A stretch of 64,000 nucleotides of DNA from sequence record MZ574432.2; one strand, 5' to 3'. Under the pieces are notes generated by a model. It was given only the letters and a program-made list of their open reading frames with translations. It was not told the origin of the DNA and searched no databases. A program made the translations under genes and the position numbers. This document shows, piece by piece, positions 64 through 59,403 of this stretch (position 1 is the stretch's first letter; each line of letters begins with the position of its first letter).

Positions 64-503
64 TGAGCACCCTGGCCTACAAAGACGGCGTCCTGGCCGC
101 AGACACTCGCGTCACCGACGGAGGTGTCATTGTCGGCTCGGTGTCCAAAATCCGCCGTGTCGGACCGGTCCTGATCGCTGGCTGCGGGGACCTGCTGGAC
201 TTGGAACGTTTCCACGTCTGGGTGAAGGCGGGCCTGGAGGATGGCTTTGCAGTGGAAGACAGTGAGTGCTGGTTGATCGCACCGGGCCACCCGTTTCTGG
301 TCTTCGAGGCCACGGGCTTTCTGAGCCTGGAGGCGCCGTTTCATGCGGCGGGCTCGGGCGGCAAGTTCGCGCGCGGCGCCCTGTCGATGGGCGCAGATGC
401 GGTTGAGGCGATCCGATGCGCTCAGCAGCACGACACCCTAAGCGGTGGCCCCATCGACGTCCTCTACCTCGACGGCCGCCCCAGTCAACGGCTGGCCATC
501 TGA
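63..503 (+). CDS. HslV/proteasome-beta-like Ntn-hydrolase peptidase
   Basis: Starts MSTLAYKDGVLAADTR and contains AAGSGGKFARGAL and D..SGG, like threonine-nucleophile Ntn hydrolases; paralogue at 49971. Confidence 0.7.
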   Translation: MSTLAYKDGVLAADTRVTDGGVIVGSVSKIRRVGPVLIAGCGDLLDLERFHVWVKAGLEDGFAVEDSECWLIAPGHPFLVFEATGFLSLEAPFHAAGSGGKFARGALSMGADAVEAIRCAQQHDTLSGGPIDVLYLDGRPSQRLAI

Positions 504-622
504 CTTTGCGGCCTGTGGGCTGCGTTAACCATGTTTGTTTACCCTCTTCGCCGCGTTAACCTTAACAAAATCCCAGGTAGTACCCGGTATGGCCGGTACT
601 ACCGGCGGTAATACCGGAGAAA

Positions 623-1159
623 ATGCCCGTGCTTCGCTATCTGAGCGCCCTTTTCGACCACATCGTCCACTACAAGCTCGCCCCCGCCCACCTGAAGGTG
701 GAGAACCAGTACGCCCTGGAGCGCCTCAAGGCCGTCGACCGCGAGATCGCCGCTGGCCGCTATGAGGGCGCCGACCTCTATGGCTCGCGCTCCTGGACCT
801 TCTGGCGCCTGAGCCCCACCGAGCGGCTCAAGCGCGCCAACAAGGCCATCGAAGGCCGCTATGGCCGCTTCCACGCCGGCGTCAATCTGGCCGCCCCGAT
901 CACCCCGGCCCGCCCTGACGCGCGCGATCGCCGCGTCCTGGGTCACAACGCCGCCTATGACGCCGATCTGGTCCTGGGCTTTCACGATGCGCGTGAGGCC
1001 GTCGATGTCGCCCCCGCCCACATCGAGCGCTATCCACGCTACAGCGAACTGCCCGCGTCCCTGCCGGCCCACCTCGACAAGGACAGCTTCCTGGACTCCC
1101 ATCCAGCCGACACCGGCGGGGACCCGTTCGCCTTGGCCTCGGGGACCCTGGCCAAATAG
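623..1159 (+). CDS. hypothetical protein (178 aa)
   Basis: ORF with GGAG Shine-Dalgarno (SD) upstream and phage-like codon usage. Confidence 0.75.
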   Translation: MPVLRYLSALFDHIVHYKLAPAHLKVENQYALERLKAVDREIAAGRYEGADLYGSRSWTFWRLSPTERLKRANKAIEGRYGRFHAGVNLAAPITPARPDARDRRVLGHNAAYDADLVLGFHDAREAVDVAPAHIERYPRYSELPASLPAHLDKDSFLDSHPADTGGDPFALASGTLAK

Positions 1160-5852: not shown

Positions 5853-6016
5853 AGGCCCGCCACACCGGCGGGCTTTCTGCTGGCCCTAGGCGTTAACCTT
5901 AACCGGGCGTTAGGGTTAACGGGGCGTAAACAAACATGGTTAACGCGGCCCATGGTCAGCCCAGGCGAAAAGGTGCAAGAAAGCTGTTGACAGCATTTCG
6001 ACCCCATGCGACAAGG
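5853..6016 (+). promoter_or_regulatory. cassette control element (terminator, CtrA-like palindrome, promoter)
   Basis: GCCCGCC..GGCGGGC-TTT; GTTAACCTTAACCGGGCGTTAGGGTTAAC; ATGGTTAA half-site; promoter motif. Confidence 0.8.
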
Positions 6017-6062: not shown

Positions 6063-6644
6063 ATGGCCCTGGTCACCGAATCCTTCGCCGTCGACATCGA
6101 CTGCACCCGCGCCCTGACCCCTGCCGAGCGGCGCGGTCTGGCCGCCGCCATCGCCCATCTGCTGGCCATCAACATCGATAAGGTCGAGCCCGAGCCGGGC
6201 GGCTACCTGACCGCCAATATCGGCCGCGTTCGCCCGGCCGGCATGACCGGCGAGGCCGGCCGCGAGGCGCGGATCAGGACCGAGGCCCTGACCAGCCTCG
6301 ACCATGACGCCCCGGTCGCCCTGACCCTGGAGTGTGGCGGCAGCGTCGATGTCATCGCCCGCTTCTACACCATGGCCGACGCCGAAACCTACCTCAACGA
6401 AAACCCGGAAATCGACCCGGTGTCGCTGAACCTGGGCTGCTACGGCATCGACGCCCCCTATGGCGTGGCCAGCGACGCCGACGCTGATAAGCTGCTCTAC
6501 GACCTGGGCTATCGCCTGCACGCCACGGCCGGCGGCTCCTGGACCTTCACCGACCCGAAGGGCTATCTCTGGGACGGCGGCGCCAAGCGTGAGGCCGTGG
6601 TCATGATCGCCCTGGCGCAAGCCGCCCAAATCGAGGAGGCGTAA
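6063..6644 (+). CDS. early hypothetical protein (193 aa)
   Basis: Start MALVTESF after GGGAGACACCCC. Confidence 0.8.
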   Translation: MALVTESFAVDIDCTRALTPAERRGLAAAIAHLLAINIDKVEPEPGGYLTANIGRVRPAGMTGEAGREARIRTEALTSLDHDAPVALTLECGGSVDVIARFYTMADAETYLNENPEIDPVSLNLGCYGIDAPYGVASDADADKLLYDLGYRLHATAGGSWTFTDPKGYLWDGGAKREAVVMIALAQAAQIEEA

Positions 6645-6649
6645 ACGCC

Positions 6650-7075
6650 ATGACCCGCTATTCGATCATGGTCGAGGTCCAGACCCTCGCCGACAGCGAA
6701 ACCCAGGCCCGCAAGGACGTTGAATTCGCCATCATTGAGGGCCGGTTCCCCGAGCACATGAATTGGATGGTTCGCCAGAGCGCCCCTTGCGCCGGCGAGA
6801 CCGTCCAGGCCGATGACACCCCCACCCGCTGGGCGACCTTTGTCGGTCAAGCCTGGGTCCAGGGCCACAGCATGGAGGTGGACGACGCGCGCGTGCGCTA
6901 CGGGATCACCGACGCCGAATTCAACGCCAATGGCGGCGATGAGCCCGCCGACTTCGACGCCCTGGCCCAAGCCGCCCGCGCCCCGCAATGGGTCAAGGAC
7001 TGGTCAGGCCCGTTCGACGTCTATATTTCCGACATCGAGGACGGGGAAGACCCCGAGGAAGTGCGCCAGCTATGA
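6650..7075 (+). CDS. early hypothetical protein (141 aa)
   Basis: GAGGAGG SD. Confidence 0.8.
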   Translation: MTRYSIMVEVQTLADSETQARKDVEFAIIEGRFPEHMNWMVRQSAPCAGETVQADDTPTRWATFVGQAWVQGHSMEVDDARVRYGITDAEFNANGGDEPADFDALAQAARAPQWVKDWSGPFDVYISDIEDGEDPEEVRQL

Positions 7076-10782: not shown

Positions 10783-10925
10783 CCCCGGCCTCATCGCCGG
10801 GGCGTCTTTTTGACCACCGCCTGGGGTTAACCCTAACGCGACGTTAAGGTTAACCCCGGCGGCCCAGGCCTTAACCATCTTTTCCCGCAAGAAAGCTGTT
10901 GACGGCATGGCATGGACATGCGATG
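10783..10925 (+). promoter_or_regulatory. cassette control element
   Basis: Hairpin + T5; GTTAACCCTAACGCGACGTTAAGGTTAAC; promoter motif. Confidence 0.8.
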
Positions 10926-25580: not shown

Positions 25581-25766
25581 CCGCCCTAGAGGCGGGCTTT
25601 TTCTTGGCCGTTAGCCTCTCGTTAAGGTTAATCCCCAGGCCCTCTGGGGTTAACCTTAACGCGGCGTTAAGGTTAACCCCGGCGGCCCAGGCCTTAACCA
25701 TGGCAAGGAAAAAAGATCGCTTTCCTGCGAGAAAGCTGTTGACCGCATAAAGGCAATATGCGACAA
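25581..25766 (+). promoter_or_regulatory. terminator + CtrA-like boxes + promoter (recurs in each 885-bp unit)
   Basis: GCCCGCC..GGCGGGC-T5; perfect GGGGTTAACCTTAAC-GCGGC-GTTAAGGTTAACCCC palindrome; promoter motif. Confidence 0.85.
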
Positions 25767-25790
25767 AGGGTCATCAACGGAGCTAGTCCA

Positions 25791-25961
25791 ATGTCCTTCC
25801 GCCTCGCCCTTACCGAAGACGCCCGCTTCACCGCCGCCCGTGGCGCGGTCCGCACCGTCCGCGAGCAAGCCCGCCCGGCGCCGCACAAGGACATTGACGG
25901 CAAGGCCCTGCTGGCGCCCGCCTCGGCGCTGGACCGCATCCGCGCCGTTCTCGGGAACTGA
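25791..25961 (+). CDS. gene B (56 aa), copy 1
   Basis: Start MSFRLAL after GGAG. Confidence 0.7.
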   Translation: MSFRLALTEDARFTAARGAVRTVREQARPAPHKDIDGKALLAPASALDRIRAVLGN

Positions 25962-25964
25962 GTC

Positions 25965-26156
25965 ATGAAGGTCATCGCGCACTATGCCAACGGCCTGCAA
26001 CGGGTCATCCCCTGCGAGACCTCGCAAGAGGCTGTGGCCGCGATCAAGGCGGCTCTGACCTATGATCGCGCCGCCAAGTTCACGCTTGACAAGCGCCTTG
26101 CCTCGGCGATCCCGACCCGCGCCGCCTCCGAACGGGTTTGGCTGTTGAGCGCGTGA
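25965..26156 (+). CDS. gene C (63 aa), copy 1
   Basis: ORF directly after gene B. Confidence 0.7.
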   Translation: MKVIAHYANGLQRVIPCETSQEAVAAIKAALTYDRAAKFTLDKRLASAIPTRAASERVWLLSA

Positions 26157-26250
26157 GGGCGATCGAAAAAAGATCGCCTCACCGCAAAAAACCTGTTGAC
26201 TCGCATAAGGCCCCTATGCGATAAAAGGTCATCGGCAACGGAGACACGCC

Positions 26251-26445
26251 ATGACCTTCCACCACAACCTGATGAGCAAGCTGGACGCGGCCCAAATGGC
26301 GGGCGAAATGACCTACGCCCAACACGCCGACATGCGCGCCACGCTGCGGGCCTCCAACATGCGCGGTCAAGTCTTCACCTCGATGGATGAACTGCGCAAG
26401 GCCTGCAAGGGCGCCGGTCGCGACTTCCAAGGCCGGTTCGCCTAA
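26251..26445 (+). CDS. gene A, copy 2
   Basis: Identical translation. Confidence 0.8.
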   Translation: MTFHHNLMSKLDAAQMAGEMTYAQHADMRATLRASNMRGQVFTSMDELRKACKGAGRDFQGRFA

Positions 26446-26674
26446 GACCCCTCCCCTGAGAGGCCCGCCCTAGAGGCGGGCTTTTTCTTGGCCGTTAGCC
26501 TCTCGTTAAGGTTAATCCCCAGGCCCTCTGGGGTTAACCTTAACGCGGCGTTAAGGTTAACCCCGGCGGCCCAGGCCTTAACCATGGCAAGGAAAAAAGA
26601 TCGCTTTCCTGCGAGAAAGCTGTTGACCGCATAAAGGCAATATGCGACAAAGGGTCATCAACGGAGCTAGTCCA

Positions 26675-26845
26675 ATGTCCTTCCGCCTCGCCCTTACCGA
26701 AGACGCCCGCTTCACCGCCGCCCGTGGCGCGGTCCGCACCGTCCGCGAGCAAGCCCGCCCGGCGCCGCACAAGGACATTGACGGCAAGGCCCTGCTGGCG
26801 CCCGCCTCGGCGCTGGACCGCATCCGCGCCGTTCTCGGGAACTGA
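26675..26845 (+). CDS. gene B, copy 2
   Basis: Identical translation. Confidence 0.7.
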   Translation: MSFRLALTEDARFTAARGAVRTVREQARPAPHKDIDGKALLAPASALDRIRAVLGN

Positions 26846-26848
26846 GTC

Positions 26849-27040
26849 ATGAAGGTCATCGCGCACTATGCCAACGGCCTGCAACGGGTCATCCCCTGCG
26901 AGACCTCGCAAGAGGCTGTGGCCGCGATCAAGGCGGCTCTGACCTATGATCGCGCCGCCAAGTTCACGCTTGACAAGCGCCTTGCCTCGGCGATCCCGAC
27001 CCGCGCCGCCTCCGAACGGGTTTGGCTGTTGAGCGCGTGA
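26849..27040 (+). CDS. gene C, copy 2
   Basis: Identical translation. Confidence 0.7.
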   Translation: MKVIAHYANGLQRVIPCETSQEAVAAIKAALTYDRAAKFTLDKRLASAIPTRAASERVWLLSA

Positions 27041-27134
27041 GGGCGATCGAAAAAAGATCGCCTCACCGCAAAAAACCTGTTGACTCGCATAAGGCCCCTA
27101 TGCGATAAAAGGTCATCGGCAACGGAGACACGCC

Positions 27135-27329
27135 ATGACCTTCCACCACAACCTGATGAGCAAGCTGGACGCGGCCCAAATGGCGGGCGAAATGACCTAC
27201 GCCCAACACGCCGACATGCGCGCCACGCTGCGGGCCTCCAACATGCGCGGTCAAGTCTTCACCTCGATGGATGAACTGCGCAAGGCCTGCAAGGGCGCCG
27301 GTCGCGACTTCCAAGGCCGGTTCGCCTAA
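27135..27329 (+). CDS. gene A, copy 3
   Basis: Identical translation. Confidence 0.8.
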   Translation: MTFHHNLMSKLDAAQMAGEMTYAQHADMRATLRASNMRGQVFTSMDELRKACKGAGRDFQGRFA

Positions 27330-27559
27330 GACCCCCTCCCCTGAGAGGCCCGCCCTAGAGGCGGGCTTTTTCTTGGCCGTTAGCCTCTCGTTAAGGTTAA
27401 TCCCCAGGCCCTCTGGGGTTAACCTTAACGCGGCGTTAAGGTTAACCCCGGCGGCCCAGGCCTTAACCATGGCAAGGAAAAAAGATCGCTTTCCTGCGAG
27501 AAAGCTGTTGACCGCATAAAGGCAATATGCGACAAAGGGTCATCAACGGAGCTAGTCCA

Positions 27560-27730
27560 ATGTCCTTCCGCCTCGCCCTTACCGAAGACGCCCGCTTCAC
27601 CGCCGCCCGTGGCGCGGTCCGCACCGTCCGCGAGCAAGCCCGCCCGGCGCCGCACAAGGACATTGACGGCAAGGCCCTGCTGGCGCCCGCCTCGGCGCTG
27701 GACCGCATCCGCGCCGTTCTCGGGAACTGA
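27560..27730 (+). CDS. gene B, copy 3
   Basis: Identical translation. Confidence 0.7.
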   Translation: MSFRLALTEDARFTAARGAVRTVREQARPAPHKDIDGKALLAPASALDRIRAVLGN

Positions 27731-27733
27731 GTC

Positions 27734-27925
27734 ATGAAGGTCATCGCGCACTATGCCAACGGCCTGCAACGGGTCATCCCCTGCGAGACCTCGCAAGAGG
27801 CTGTGGCCGCGATCAAGGCGGCTCTGACCTATGATCGCGCCGCCAAGTTCACGCTTGACAAGCGCCTTGCCTCGGCGATCCCGACCCGCGCCGCCTCCGA
27901 ACGGGTTTGGCTGTTGAGCGCGTGA
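27734..27925 (+). CDS. gene C, copy 3
   Basis: Identical translation. Confidence 0.7.
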   Translation: MKVIAHYANGLQRVIPCETSQEAVAAIKAALTYDRAAKFTLDKRLASAIPTRAASERVWLLSA

Positions 27926-28019
27926 GGGCGATCGAAAAAAGATCGCCTCACCGCAAAAAACCTGTTGACTCGCATAAGGCCCCTATGCGATAAAAGGTCA
28001 TCGGCAACGGAGACACGCC

Positions 28020-28214
28020 ATGACCTTCCACCACAACCTGATGAGCAAGCTGGACGCGGCCCAAATGGCGGGCGAAATGACCTACGCCCAACACGCCGAC
28101 ATGCGCGCCACGCTGCGGGCCTCCAACATGCGCGGTCAAGTCTTCACCTCGATGGATGAACTGCGCAAGGCCTGCAAGGGCGCCGGTCGCGACTTCCAAG
28201 GCCGGTTCGCCTAA
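28020..28214 (+). CDS. gene A, copy 4
   Basis: Identical translation. Confidence 0.8.
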   Translation: MTFHHNLMSKLDAAQMAGEMTYAQHADMRATLRASNMRGQVFTSMDELRKACKGAGRDFQGRFA

Positions 28215-28444
28215 GACCCCCTCCCCTGAGAGGCCCGCCCTAGAGGCGGGCTTTTTCTTGGCCGTTAGCCTCTCGTTAAGGTTAATCCCCAGGCCCTCTG
28301 GGGTTAACCTTAACGCGGCGTTAAGGTTAACCCCGGCGGCCCAGGCCTTAACCATGGCAAGGAAAAAAGATCGCTTTCCTGCGAGAAAGCTGTTGACCGC
28401 ATAAAGGCAATATGCGACAAAGGGTCATCAACGGAGCTAGTCCA

Positions 28445-28615
28445 ATGTCCTTCCGCCTCGCCCTTACCGAAGACGCCCGCTTCACCGCCGCCCGTGGCGC
28501 GGTCCGCACCGTCCGCGAGCAAGCCCGCCCGGCGCCGCACAAGGACATTGACGGCAAGGCCCTGCTGGCGCCCGCCTCGGCGCTGGACCGCATCCGCGCC
28601 GTTCTCGGGAACTGA
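28445..28615 (+). CDS. gene B, copy 4
   Basis: Identical translation. Confidence 0.7.
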   Translation: MSFRLALTEDARFTAARGAVRTVREQARPAPHKDIDGKALLAPASALDRIRAVLGN

Positions 28616-28618
28616 GTC

Positions 28619-28810
28619 ATGAAGGTCATCGCGCACTATGCCAACGGCCTGCAACGGGTCATCCCCTGCGAGACCTCGCAAGAGGCTGTGGCCGCGATCA
28701 AGGCGGCTCTGACCTATGATCGCGCCGCCAAGTTCACGCTTGACAAGCGCCTTGCCTCGGCGATCCCGACCCGCGCCGCCTCCGAACGGGTTTGGCTGTT
28801 GAGCGCGTGA
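28619..28810 (+). CDS. gene C, copy 4
   Basis: Identical translation. Confidence 0.7.
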   Translation: MKVIAHYANGLQRVIPCETSQEAVAAIKAALTYDRAAKFTLDKRLASAIPTRAASERVWLLSA

Positions 28811-28904
28811 GGGCGATCGAAAAAAGATCGCCTCACCGCAAAAAACCTGTTGACTCGCATAAGGCCCCTATGCGATAAAAGGTCATCGGCAACGGAGACA
28901 CGCC

Positions 28905-29099
28905 ATGACCTTCCACCACAACCTGATGAGCAAGCTGGACGCGGCCCAAATGGCGGGCGAAATGACCTACGCCCAACACGCCGACATGCGCGCCACGCTG
29001 CGGGCCTCCAACATGCGCGGTCAAGTCTTCACCTCGATGGATGAACTGCGCAAGGCCTGCAAGGGCGCCGGTCGCGACTTCCAAGGCCGGTTCGCCTAA
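28905..29099 (+). CDS. gene A, copy 5
   Basis: Identical translation. Confidence 0.8.
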   Translation: MTFHHNLMSKLDAAQMAGEMTYAQHADMRATLRASNMRGQVFTSMDELRKACKGAGRDFQGRFA

Positions 29100-29329
29100 G
29101 ACCCCCTCCCCTGAGAGGCCCGCCCTAGAGGCGGGCTTTTTCTTGGCCGTTAGCCTCTCGTTAAGGTTAATCCCCAGGCCCTCTGGGGTTAACCTTAACG
29201 CGGCGTTAAGGTTAACCCCGGCGGCCCAGGCCTTAACCATGGCAAGGAAAAAAGATCGCTTTCCTGCGAGAAAGCTGTTGACCGCATAAAGGCAATATGC
29301 GACAAAGGGTCATCAACGGAGCTAGTCCA

Positions 29330-39534: not shown

Positions 39535-39572
39535 TGACGTAATTCTTGACACGTGTCGTTAACCATGTCACA
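39535..39572 (+). promoter_or_regulatory. late/middle-type promoter motif with a CtrA half-site
   Basis: TGACGTAATTCTTGACACGTGTCGTTAACCATGTCA. Confidence 0.65.
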
Positions 39573-47201: not shown

Positions 47202-47512
47202 GCAGCTATTCCGACTACGCCGCCTATCGCGAGAAGGAATTGCGGCTGGCCAAGCTGGTCGGCGGTGAAAGCGAACTGAGGCGCCTGCTCCAGGAGGGTC
47301 GCCGCATAGGCCCTGGCGCCATTCTTCGCCGCGATCCCTACACCCACAAATACCACTACGCCCATCCTGGCTCCTCGGTCCAGAAGCCGGCCAAGCCCCG
47401 AGGCCTGTCGGTCGCCAAGCCTCCCGCTCCCAAGCCACCCGCGCCCCAACCGCCGCCTCGGCGAACCTTTCTGCAATCACTACGGGAATTCCTCCTCTAT
47501 CTCTCCACCTAA
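47198..47512 (+). CDS. basic, Pro-rich protein (104 aa)
   Basis: ATGA coupling; followed by AAAGCCGCC-TTCG-GGCGGCTTTTT. Confidence 0.65.
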   Translation: MSSYSDYAAYREKELRLAKLVGGESELRRLLQEGRRIGPGAILRRDPYTHKYHYAHPGSSVQKPAKPRGLSVAKPPAPKPPAPQPPPRRTFLQSLREFLLYLST

Positions 47513-47537
47513 AGCCGCCTTCGGGCGGCTTTTTCGT
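47511..47537 (+). terminator. intrinsic terminator
   Basis: AAAGCCGCC-TTCG-GGCGGCTTTTT. Confidence 0.8.
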
Positions 47538-47617
47538 GACGCGTCCATTTTCTTGGTGCTGTTTTTCTTGACGCATGACGTGATCCATGACACGACATGG
47601 TTAATCACGAGGTTCAC

Positions 47618-48331
47618 ATGAACGCCCTCCTCTCCCAAGACGAAATCGACGGCCTCTTCGACGACGAACCGGCCGTCTACACCCTCACCGGCGTCACTCA
47701 CGTGCCGACCCTCAAGCCGGGCGTCTACCAGACCGGCTACGAGACCACCGCCAACATGAACTACGCCCCCGGCGTCTCCCAGACCGAGATCAGCACCCTG
47801 ACCGTGCCGGGCATCCACACCACCGCCCGCTATCTGAGCGCCACGGTCCCGACCGACGCGCTGCTGCATGGCGTCGGCGACACCATGGTCGGCGCGCCGA
47901 TCTTCTCGGACGTGTTCGTCATCGACGAGGCGGCGCCGCTGCTGTCGCGCGATCTGGTCGCCAGCCTGGGCCTGGAAGGCTACTATGGCGACATCGCTCC
48001 GCTGCAAGCCCCCGGCCCTGGCCGCGTGATCGATGGCGGCGACGTCACCTTCACCGTCAACACCTTCTCCTGGCCCAAGGCCGCGCCCCTGGCCGGCGAC
48101 CTGGACGATGAGGAGGAATTCTTCCTCGACGAAAGCCCCGACGGCTTTAGCTGGTGCCTGATCCCCGACGCCAAGCGCACCGCCTGGAACGCCTTCTGCG
48201 CCGGCTTCGAAGCCACTGCCTTCGACGATCCCGATGATCCGCCGTCGGCGCATCTGCCCGACTGGGTCAAGGTCATTGAAGGCCACCCGCGCTGGACCGT
48301 CTTCAAGCGCCCCCGCCAGAAGTTCTCGTAA
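47618..48331 (+). CDS. hypothetical protein with an N-terminal FliM-like motif (237 aa)
   Basis: GAGG SD; begins MNALLSQDEIDGLF. Confidence 0.75.
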   Translation: MNALLSQDEIDGLFDDEPAVYTLTGVTHVPTLKPGVYQTGYETTANMNYAPGVSQTEISTLTVPGIHTTARYLSATVPTDALLHGVGDTMVGAPIFSDVFVIDEAAPLLSRDLVASLGLEGYYGDIAPLQAPGPGRVIDGGDVTFTVNTFSWPKAAPLAGDLDDEEEFFLDESPDGFSWCLIPDAKRTAWNAFCAGFEATAFDDPDDPPSAHLPDWVKVIEGHPRWTVFKRPRQKFS

Positions 48332-48353: not shown

Positions 48354-48635
48354 ATGACCACGACCGCCAAGACCGTCGATCAGTTCGCCGCCAACGAGCG
48401 TGAAAAGATCGCCGACCAACTCAACCCCTTCGCCCGCGAGCGCTTCCTGGCCGGAAAGCTGCCGCTGGACGTCATCGAATACCGTGGCGAGGGCGTGCGC
48501 TCGATGGAACGCGCCATCGCCGCCAAGCGCCGCAACGGCCAGAGCGTCACCAAGGACGAACTGGAAGAACTGGCCTTCGTCAAGAAGTGGACGGCCGATC
48601 CGATCATCGTCATCCCCACCGATCTGGCGGCCTGA
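48354..48635 (+). CDS. hypothetical protein (93 aa)
   Basis: Start MTTTAKT. Confidence 0.7.
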   Translation: MTTTAKTVDQFAANEREKIADQLNPFARERFLAGKLPLDVIEYRGEGVRSMERAIAAKRRNGQSVTKDELEELAFVKKWTADPIIVIPTDLAA

Positions 48636-48853
48636 TGATCCCGTACGATCTTCGCCAGCAGCATGACGAGTGGGGCAACAGCCCCGCCCTGCTGTCGGCC
48701 GAGGATCGTGCGGCCCTCGACCTCGGCGCCTGGAAGCGGGCGGGTCATGAAACCCTCTGCCAGACCTGCGACCGCCCCTACTGGAAACACCCCGAGGTCA
48801 TCGGCGCCCTGTGGCTCCATCGCCTCTGCGACAACACCCTGGTGAAGCTATGA
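48635..48853 (+). CDS. small Cys/His protein (72 aa)
   Basis: CQTC..H..LC motif. Confidence 0.7.
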   Translation: MIPYDLRQQHDEWGNSPALLSAEDRAALDLGAWKRAGHETLCQTCDRPYWKHPEVIGALWLHRLCDNTLVKL

Positions 48854-49406: not shown

Positions 49407-49678
49407 GCATCATGCCCGAGCAAGCCATCATCTGTCTCGACGACGAGGCCCTCGACCAGGAGATCGCCGCCGCCGCCCAGGTGGAGACCTGCCCCTTCTG
49501 CTGCTCGACGCGCATCGAGGCGCCGATGGAAGGACACCCGTCCGGCTACGGCGCGATGATGCAGACCGGTCCGACCGTCTGCTTCGATTGCGAGGCCTAC
49601 GAGATGTCGCACTGGCGCGACTATCCCGAGGCCACGCCCGAGGAGAAGCAAAAGGGCTGGATCAGGGGCACGGTCTGA
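49400..49678 (+). CDS. zinc-ribbon protein (~92 aa)
   Basis: CPFC..CFDC. Confidence 0.7.
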   Translation: MVSIMPEQAIICLDDEALDQEIAAAAQVETCPFCCSTRIEAPMEGHPSGYGAMMQTGPTVCFDCEAYEMSHWRDYPEATPEEKQKGWIRGTV

Positions 49679-49970: not shown

Positions 49971-50402
49971 GTGACCACCATCGTCTTCAAGGACGGCGTC
50001 GTCGCCGCTGACCGTCTCGTGACGGAACGCGGCGCCAGCCTTGGCTACAAGACCAAGATCGTCAAGAAAGGTGGGGCGATCGCGGCGGGCGCGGGCTCCT
50101 CTATCGTCTGCCGCCAGTTCACCGACTGGTTCCTGGCCGGCATGCGAGGCAACCCGCCGGCCATGCGCACCGATCCACAGCGCCCGGCCTCCGAGTGCGT
50201 CATCTATTTCGGCAAGGACCGCTTCGTCACCTTCGATGGTGACGGCGTCAGCGAAATCTTCGCCGACCACCACACCCTGGGCTCGGGGGCTCCGTTCGCG
50301 CGGGGCGCCCTGGCCGCCGGCGCTGATCCGCGTCGCGCCGTGGAGATCGCCATGCAGTTTGATCTCTACAGCGGCGGCGCGATCGACGTCCTTTCCCTCT
50401 GA
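49971..50402 (+). CDS. HslV/proteasome-beta-like Ntn-hydrolase peptidase
   Basis: GTG start giving (M)TTIVFKDGVVAAD; LGSGAPFARGAL; D.YSGG. Confidence 0.75.
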   Translation: MTTIVFKDGVVAADRLVTERGASLGYKTKIVKKGGAIAAGAGSSIVCRQFTDWFLAGMRGNPPAMRTDPQRPASECVIYFGKDRFVTFDGDGVSEIFADHHTLGSGAPFARGALAAGADPRRAVEIAMQFDLYSGGAIDVLSL

Positions 50403-59373: not shown

Positions 59374-59403
59374 TTTCTTGACATGCGTCGTTAACCATGT
59401 CAT
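59374..59403 (+). promoter_or_regulatory. late/middle-type promoter motif with a CtrA half-site
   Basis: TTCTTGACATGCGTCGTTAACCATGTCA, near-identical to 39543. Confidence 0.65.

Follow-up and report, generated by a model that had tools for sequence, protein, structure and literature searches.

A FliM-like peptide at the N-terminus of gp106 of Caulobacter phage BL47, a candidate docking site for CheY and Cle proteins

The N-terminus of gp106, a protein of the giant Caulobacter phage BL47, carries a peptide resembling the motif by which the flagellar protein FliM binds CheY. The DNA analysed, hereafter the window, is 64,000 nucleotides long and corresponds to bases 1-64000 of the BL47 record MZ574432.2 (megablast: 100% identity, coordinates in agreement with the record). 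A member of the Dolichocephalovirinae, the Bertelyvirus BL47 has C. vibrioides CB15 as its host. Six other Bertelyvirus records are identical over the region, and the gp106 protein is the same in all 7. The gene (CcrBL47_gp106; coordinates of this and other features are in Table 1) encodes an acidic protein (isoelectric point 4.2) starting with MNALLSQDEIDGLFDD, as translated from the window. Pfam (E up to 10) and NCBIfam scans assigned no family to gp106 or to its orthologues, and comparison with PHROG gave a chance-level match only (E 0.72), with no meaningful or structural family. Judging from its sequence, gp106 may be a decoy, or an adaptor, that docks on CheY or Cle proteins of the host, a reading which we consider the likeliest specific mechanism and to which we assign a probability of about 0.4.

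The FliM-like peptide of gp106

The CheY-binding motif of FliM has been defined as LSQxEIDxLL (Nesper et al., PMC5677366). The peptide LLSQDEIDGLF of gp106 meets 7 of the 8 fixed positions, and the eighth is a conservative L-to-F change; Caulobacter FliM itself scores 7/8 against the same consensus. The likeness had been the core of the initial annotation, and it is borne out by the count, the Ile-Asp pair included. In Caulobacter, a FliM peptide with the sequence ILNQDEIDSLL binds CleD (with cyclic di-GMP, c-di-GMP), and an N-terminal FliM fragment spanning residues 2-65 binds CleA. Replacement of the Ile-Asp pair (I57/D58) abolishes the binding of both CleA and CleD, and the same pair is needed for motor reversals (PMC5677366). 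In E. coli FliM, residue D12 forms a salt bridge with K119 of CheY (10.1101/781468). Residues I10-D11 of gp106 align with I57-D58 of Caulobacter FliM, and D11 aligns with D12 of the E. coli protein. Over the host peptide ILNQDEIDSLL, gp106 is identical at 7/11 positions and positive at 9/11. When gp106 was compared by BLASTP to a Caulobacter FliM frame (L162), the motif was the best, and the only meaningful, alignment (E 0.096, in a single comparison). This frame, as well as a second one (L079), is FliM according to Pfam (PF02154 at 248 and 243 bits, respectively, with PF01052 also present). Neither the FliM middle domain PF02154 nor the FliMN_C/SpoA domain PF01052 was detected by Pfam in gp106 at E up to 10. 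A sequence search of the PDB with residues 1-30, a query shorter than the HMMER filters can handle, gave no match. The likeness to FliM is limited to the docking peptide, and gp106 is therefore not a FliM homologue.

The setting of the peptide recalls FliM as well. The Ile-Asp pair is flanked by leucines, and the motif starts 4 residues from the N-terminus of gp106, as in Salmonella and E. coli FliM; the Salmonella FliM chain in the PDB has the same N-terminus, which was aligned to the Caulobacter one. Acidic residues and a stretch with no confident fold come after the motif, and a terminal position followed by a linker is the usual setting for a docking peptide. Differences are evident in turn. 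Outside the motif, gp106 bears no relation to FliM; the motif itself ends in Phe and not Leu, and the host FliM has Asn in place of Ser, with the motif at residues 52-61 (numbering of PMC5677366). Similarly, in the alphaproteobacterial FliMs sampled, the motif lies some tens of residues from the N-terminus, and Asn is always found where gp106 has Ser. Downstream, these FliMs read S-L-L-G-F where the phage peptide reads G-L-F-D, a divergence from the host form that counts against mimicry of FliM. Recent capture of host fliM DNA was considered and rejected, since the residues in common already account for the nucleotide identity (26/39). The phage motif differs from the host one at Ser and at G-L-F-D, without any surplus of DNA identity, and is therefore no copy of the host version.

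In alphaproteobacterial genomes the host-type motif appears to be specific to FliM. A degenerate DNA pattern retrieved at least 120 loci from bacterial genomes, and among the matches listed 120/120 are FliM-like. The listed loci share a single sequence context, with 313-339 residues after the motif wherever the downstream frame is complete, and the two which were checked by Pfam are FliM.

According to the model proposed, the N-terminal peptide of gp106 would become a short helix upon docking at the alpha4-beta5-alpha5 face of CheY-family receiver domains in their activated state, either CheY~P or c-di-GMP-bound CleA-E, and take the surface used for FliM binding. CheY and Cle proteins would be titrated away from the flagellar switch, or tethered to a partner of the C-terminal domain of gp106, and the outcome would be an altered motor bias and altered motor-linked surface signalling in infected cells. 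The host offers plausible targets, having a large family of CheY-like proteins and five Cle proteins which bind the N-terminal site of FliM (PMC5677366). Phages related to BL47 are flagello- and pilitropic, and adsorption of BL47 by way of the flagellum or pilus is inferred from phiCbK (PMC9437464). A phage adsorbing via the rotating flagellum and polar pili could plausibly benefit from control of host motility or development, or from exclusion of further phage. Binding of gp106 to CheY or Cle proteins, the motor effect and the benefit to the phage are what we infer from the peptide and its setting.

Orthologues, gene start and the question of coincidence

Relatives of gp106 were sought in 5.8 billion clustered proteins, in 1.84 billion representatives (by a profile search), in IMG/VR and in Joint Genome Institute (JGI) metagenomes. 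The profile search returned 6 proteins at E up to 1e-3, namely P0001 (gp106 itself), P0002, P0004, P0005, P0006 and P0007. IMG/VR yielded only phages CcrSC and CcrBL9 as sources of orthologues, and no orthologue was found in the JGI metagenomes. The family is thus tiny. It includes the Logan orthologue P0002, which is 36% identical to gp106 overall and matches it at 14/16 N-terminal residues; the CcrSC and CcrBL9 proteins (P0003 and P0004); P0005, another orthologue from Logan, likewise in synteny; and P0006 and P0007, each a stand-alone protein. Paralogues within BL47 were looked for and rejected, as tblastn finds one place per genome. Orthology was confirmed by synteny with gp107-gp115, and gp106 is the most divergent gene of the syntenic block (36-42% identity, versus 50-93% for most of its neighbours).

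Judged by sequence and structure prediction, gp106 appears to be modular, with a FliM_N-type peptide, some 145 acidic residues with no confident fold, and a small C-terminal domain. The full-length AlphaFold2 (AF2) model is poor, with a mean pLDDT (predicted local distance difference test) of 37.6, and rests on 4 sequences. Its low-confidence prediction includes a helix at residues 7-13 and a small alpha/beta domain at the C-terminus, with pLDDT ~20-30 over residues 12-165. Gly, Pro, Thr, Ser and Ala make up 48% of residues 21-160. The middle region is mostly unalignable between orthologues, apart from some short islands of conservation, among them ALLHG (residues 81-85) and a block at 134-143. 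The C-terminal domain, ~70 residues long, features invariant F, D, W, R, W, P, H-P and V-F columns, and 10 columns are invariant in an alignment of seven sequences. It also occurs alone, in the 58- and 63-aa proteins P0006 and P0007. Modelled by AF2 in isolation from seven sequences, the domain reaches a mean pLDDT of 73.8 and a pTM (predicted template modelling score) of 0.63; comparison of the model with the PDB and BFVD gave no significant fold match (best E 1.5 and 0.12, respectively). Since most family-wide invariant columns fall in this domain, and since it exists on its own, the C-terminal domain is the conserved core of the family. The docking reading can be phrased more fully on these grounds. 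The first 14 residues of gp106 would be a short-linear-motif mimic docking chemotaxis CheYs or c-di-GMP-activated Cle proteins, the C-terminal domain would serve as a second binding module, making gp106 an adaptor rather than a simple decoy, and motor bias, surface sensing or swarmer-cell development would be rewired. We advance this fuller version tentatively, as a plausible possibility. More speculatively, the targets of gp106 might extend to other single-domain receivers acting in the cell-cycle circuit of Caulobacter.

The initial annotation had placed the gene behind a terminator/promoter region of its own, and such a region is present. A hairpin with a T-run precedes gp106, overlapping the end of gp105, which terminates at 47512 (stop codon 47510-47512). 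A simple terminator scan had missed the G+C-rich hairpin, some of the T-run being taken up in its stem; hairpins equivalent to it lie upstream of the orthologues in Logan contig L002 and in CcrSC (L003). A promoter-like block and a Shine-Dalgarno-like GAGG follow. The order of block, GAGG and ATG, as well as the spacing of the GAGG, is kept in 5/5 orthologous loci (BL47, Logan contigs L002 and L063, CcrSC (L003) and CcrBL9 (L004)). The block is recognisable in L063, CcrSC and CcrBL9 even though the proteins are only 36-42% identical. An alternative in-frame ATG at 47597 was rejected as the start of gp106. This codon falls within the conserved block, and its counterpart in CcrSC and CcrBL9 is not in the frame of the gene; the start is therefore at 47618, and the consensus motif corresponds to residues 5-14. 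A start downstream of the motif, which would have deprived gp106 of the peptide, is likewise at odds with the conserved array of block, ribosome-binding site (RBS) and ATG found in the five loci.

What is conserved at the N-terminus could in principle be the nucleic acid and not the peptide, if promoter, 5' untranslated region and the first 48 nt of the coding sequence formed one regulatory or recombining block. BL47 and L002 are identical at 55/60 nt immediately upstream and at 44/48 nt in codons 1-16 (92% in both intervals), versus 47-65% in the rest of the gene. Synonymous changes affect 1/14 identical-residue codons in the N-terminal region and 20/71 elsewhere. The block, moreover, contains an octamer resembling a SciP/CtrA half-site, strongly over-represented in the window. 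But L063, CcrSC and CcrBL9 keep the upstream block and yet differ in the first codons, and the block therefore does not need this coding sequence. In addition, the two non-synonymous differences of L002 (S to T and F to H) fall at the more tolerant positions of the motif. On balance, conservation of the nucleic acid alone is an improbable account of the peptide. The N-terminal likeness of BL47 and L002 could nonetheless reflect constraint at the DNA level, or recombination, rather than selection on the peptide; in the present sample selection on the peptide is inseparable from either. This counts against docking; the retention of the N-terminus in an orthologue as distant as P0002 speaks for it.

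A second alternative, the main one, is that the likeness to FliM is coincidental. The N-terminus of gp106 would be a generic capped, amphipathic acidic helix with some other partner, provided by the phage, by the host or by its own C-terminal domain. The functional part would be the C-terminal domain, and the CheY family would not be involved. We regard coincidence as only a little less probable than docking. The expectation that homologues share the motif held only in part. The motif is full in the BL47 group (7/8), and P0002 retains it at 6/8, with Thr for Ser and His for the last Leu. It falls to 3/8 in CcrSC and CcrBL9 and is absent from P0005. A number of observations weigh against docking as the conserved role of the N-terminus. 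Even P0002 is imperfect, its His occupying the last hydrophobic position. In CcrSC and CcrBL9, I-D-x-L plus F are kept, and basic residues occur where FliM has neutral or acidic ones. P0005 scores 0/8, its N-terminus being unrelated, and lacking the helix, despite synteny and the same promoter block. Only M1, I10, D11 and L13 are invariant at the N-terminus of four orthologues, and invariant residues concentrate in the C-terminal domain, itself found as a stand-alone protein. Given such patchy conservation, the motif is not the function that the gp106 family conserves. CcrSC and CcrBL9, moreover, infect the same strain, CB15, without the full motif, which is therefore dispensable for infecting this host.

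Control searches point in the same direction. In IMG/VR, 58 places match the pattern L[ST]QDEIDxL. They fall into ~37 unrelated contexts and lie for the most part in the interior of proteins, and one of them (L056) is a genuine FliM. Equal or better matches to the consensus than that of gp106 were found in many other viral proteins. As an example, phage lysozymes (L013 and L052, Pfam Phage_lysozyme) hold a full 8/8 match in an internal helix, and a SU10-type portal protein (L010) bears the motif at its N-terminus. Ser-x-x-Glu is often seen as a helix cap. The motif is a favourable helix start, able to arise independently of CheY binding. A general enrichment of N-terminal copies in viral proteins was rejected, as their number is chance-like once internal Met codons are allowed for.

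Other features argue against coincidence. The match of gp106 is N-terminal, includes every charged and hydrophobic contact position, precedes an acidic and putatively flexible linker that recalls FliM, and occurs in a flagellum-dependent subfamily. In the six-frame translation of the 64-kb window the motif is found once, as is its core EID.L[LFIMV]. The chance expectation, from rough typical amino-acid frequencies, is ~6e-10 per residue. From the IMG/VR control counts, an N-terminal match is estimated to arise by chance in roughly 1e-7 of viral proteins, a rarity that is notable for BL47 and too weak to dismiss coincidence over all the phages scanned. With rates so low for window, residue and IMG/VR proteins, a chance origin is unlikely in BL47 taken by itself.

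Genomic setting

gp106 opens a run of small conserved genes, flanked on one side by gp089, the portal gene, and on the other by the genes for scaffold and capsid (gp126-128). Position suggests a third explanation, that gp106 is a head-associated morphogenetic or internal protein produced together with portal and capsid, the N-terminal peptide being a targeting or processed segment. The acidic nature of the protein, its large portion with no confident fold, and the architecture that its promoter-like block shares with the sites preceding the portal gene and following the capsid genes, fit such a role. The same block of genes encodes gp113, annotated as a hypothetical protein, which matches the HslV-family peptidase group phrog_1040 (E 1.3e-31). 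gp113 is conserved at 67-86% in all four related loci, and this proteasome-like peptidase could be either a prohead or a regulatory protease. But gp106 has no structural PHROG or Pfam family, the scaffold role is already filled by gp126 (phrog_206, E 6e-36), and plainly non-structural genes reside in the intervening block, as gp121, a nucleotidyltransferase. The presence of a peptidase and a nucleotidyltransferase implies that the run is an accessory block inside the head region and not a structural set, and a role of gp106 in the head is unlikely.

The genes gp108 and gp111, just downstream, are conserved far better than gp106 (74-93% across lineages for gp108). Paired Cys motifs, recognised by eye in both, are suggestive of zinc ribbons, and the two products may act together with gp106.

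Three promoter-like sites of one architecture, all on the plus strand, were identified, and no further such site, at up to 2 mismatches, is present in the first 100 kb of BL47. The copy before gp106 is kept in four other phage lineages. The architecture common to the gp106, portal and capsid-side sites suggests co-regulation of gp106 with head genes, and the three may form a head-region promoter class. The octamer TTAACCAT is present in 14 copies in the window, versus 0.25 expected. It corresponds to the core of the published SciP motif and to half of a CtrA box (PMC4083442). Near the left end, several copies lie within dense GGTTAA/GTTAAC clusters; terminal regions rich in CtrA sites have already been described in phiCbK-like phages (PMC9437464). 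Five more copies belong to a tandem repeat with units of ~885 bp. The repeat may partly explain why gp106 of BL47 is displaced by ~4.9-5.5 kb towards higher coordinates compared with the other six Bertelyvirus records, the differences in total size being larger.

Table 1. Features of the BL47 window discussed in the text
Feature	Coordinates	Strand	Remarks
Intrinsic-terminator-like hairpin and T-run	47511-47534	+	ends the gp103-gp105 unit; RNAfold -18.8 kcal/mol
Promoter-like block	47568-47604	+	TTGACG -35-like hexamer at 47568-47573; CATG-containing elements; conserved in five loci
ATGGTTAA	47597-47604		in the promoter-like block; reverse complement of TTAACCAT, SciP/CtrA half-site octamer
Shine-Dalgarno-like GAGG	47609-47612	+	5 nt before the ATG at 47618
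CcrBL47_gp106	47618-48331	+	237 aa; annotated hypothetical protein
FliM_N-like motif LLSQDEIDGLF	47627-47659	+	gp106 residues 4-14
Middle region	47666-48100	+	residues 17-161; Gly/Pro/Thr/Ser/Ala-rich, no confident fold, pLDDT ~20-30
C-terminal alpha/beta domain	48101-48328	+	residues ~162-237; family-defining; invariant or near-invariant in all five orthologues
gp108	48635-48853		
gp111	49412-49678		
gp113	49971-50402	+	HslV-family peptidase
Promoter-like site before portal gene	39546-39570	+	
Promoter-like site before gp106	47568-47592	+	
Promoter-like site after capsid genes	59378-59402	+	
TTAACCAT copies	525, 2278, 2334(-), 5936(-), 9700, 10871, 25694-29233 (5 copies), 39559, 47597(-), 59391		
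GGTTAA/GTTAAC clusters	2230-2400, 5890-5950, 10830-10880		dense; several TTAACCAT copies within
Tandem repeat, ~885 bp	~25,600-29,300		five octamer-bearing copies, starting at 25694, 26578, 27463, 28348 and 29233

Other viral copies, known systems and meaning

A few viral contigs carry isolated copies of the motif. In L012 (IMGVR_UViG_3300006226_001703, 86.6 kb, ~35% GC) an open reading frame (ORF) of 150 aa (6364-6813, minus strand) matches the FliM-type motif in full (8/8) near residue 31. A linker of Gly, Pro and Asp comes next, then a stretch rich in Lys and a tail resembling a coiled coil, with no FliM domain. Besides gp106, its product may be another viral protein in which a FliM_N-like peptide is set in a linker. 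ORFs of 107 aa in L053 (5415-5735, plus strand) and 79 aa in L011 (11725-11961, plus strand), with no assigned family, bear LSQDEID-x-L at the extreme N-terminus, without the final hydrophobic residue. Taken together, these N-terminal or linker-flanked copies hint at a possible recurrence of FliM mimicry. A different case is L056 (IMGVR_UViG_3300009093_000034, 305.8 kb), classed as viral, which encodes a genuine FliM N-terminal region (200-874, plus strand; Pfam FliM, E 8.5e-15). L056 is either a misclassified bacterial contig or a very large phage with a flagellar switch gene.

For eukaryotic viruses, mimicking short motifs of the host is a major strategy; in phages, to our knowledge, it is hardly documented. 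In the literature that we searched, no phage protein is reported to target the interface between CheY and FliM. PilB, the ATPase of type IV pili, is blocked by Tip and Aqs1, two proteins from Pseudomonas phages. The logic proposed for gp106 would be alike, a small accessory protein acting against the adsorption apparatus, which could prevent superinfection. In contrast to gp106, Tip and Aqs1 target pilus assembly via folded domains, and neither sequence nor fold relates them to gp106.

A further parallel is the use of CtrA sites by phiCbK-like and other pili- and flagellotropic phages of alphaproteobacteria (Mascolo et al. 2022, PMC9437464). The gp106 block shares the TTAACCAT half-site, in which the window is enriched. 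The published TTAA-N7-TTAA arrays, however, are dense in terminal repeat regions, whereas gp106 has a single putative half-site beside the RBS, in the head region. Through this putative site, phage expression would be coupled to the regulator that governs the genes for flagellum, pilus and chemotaxis.

If the likeness to FliM is coincidental, what gp106 defines is nonetheless an ORFan family, small and quick to evolve, whose C-terminal domain is new. The CheY-like proteins of Caulobacter, unusually many, converge on the N-terminus of FliM and control swimming, surface attachment and holdfast production (PMC5677366). If the docking reading is true, the first 14 residues of gp106 would provide a probe to sort which CheY and Cle proteins use the FliM site, and a competitor evolved by a phage would demonstrate that motor signalling is manipulated by flagellotropic phages once they have entered the cell.

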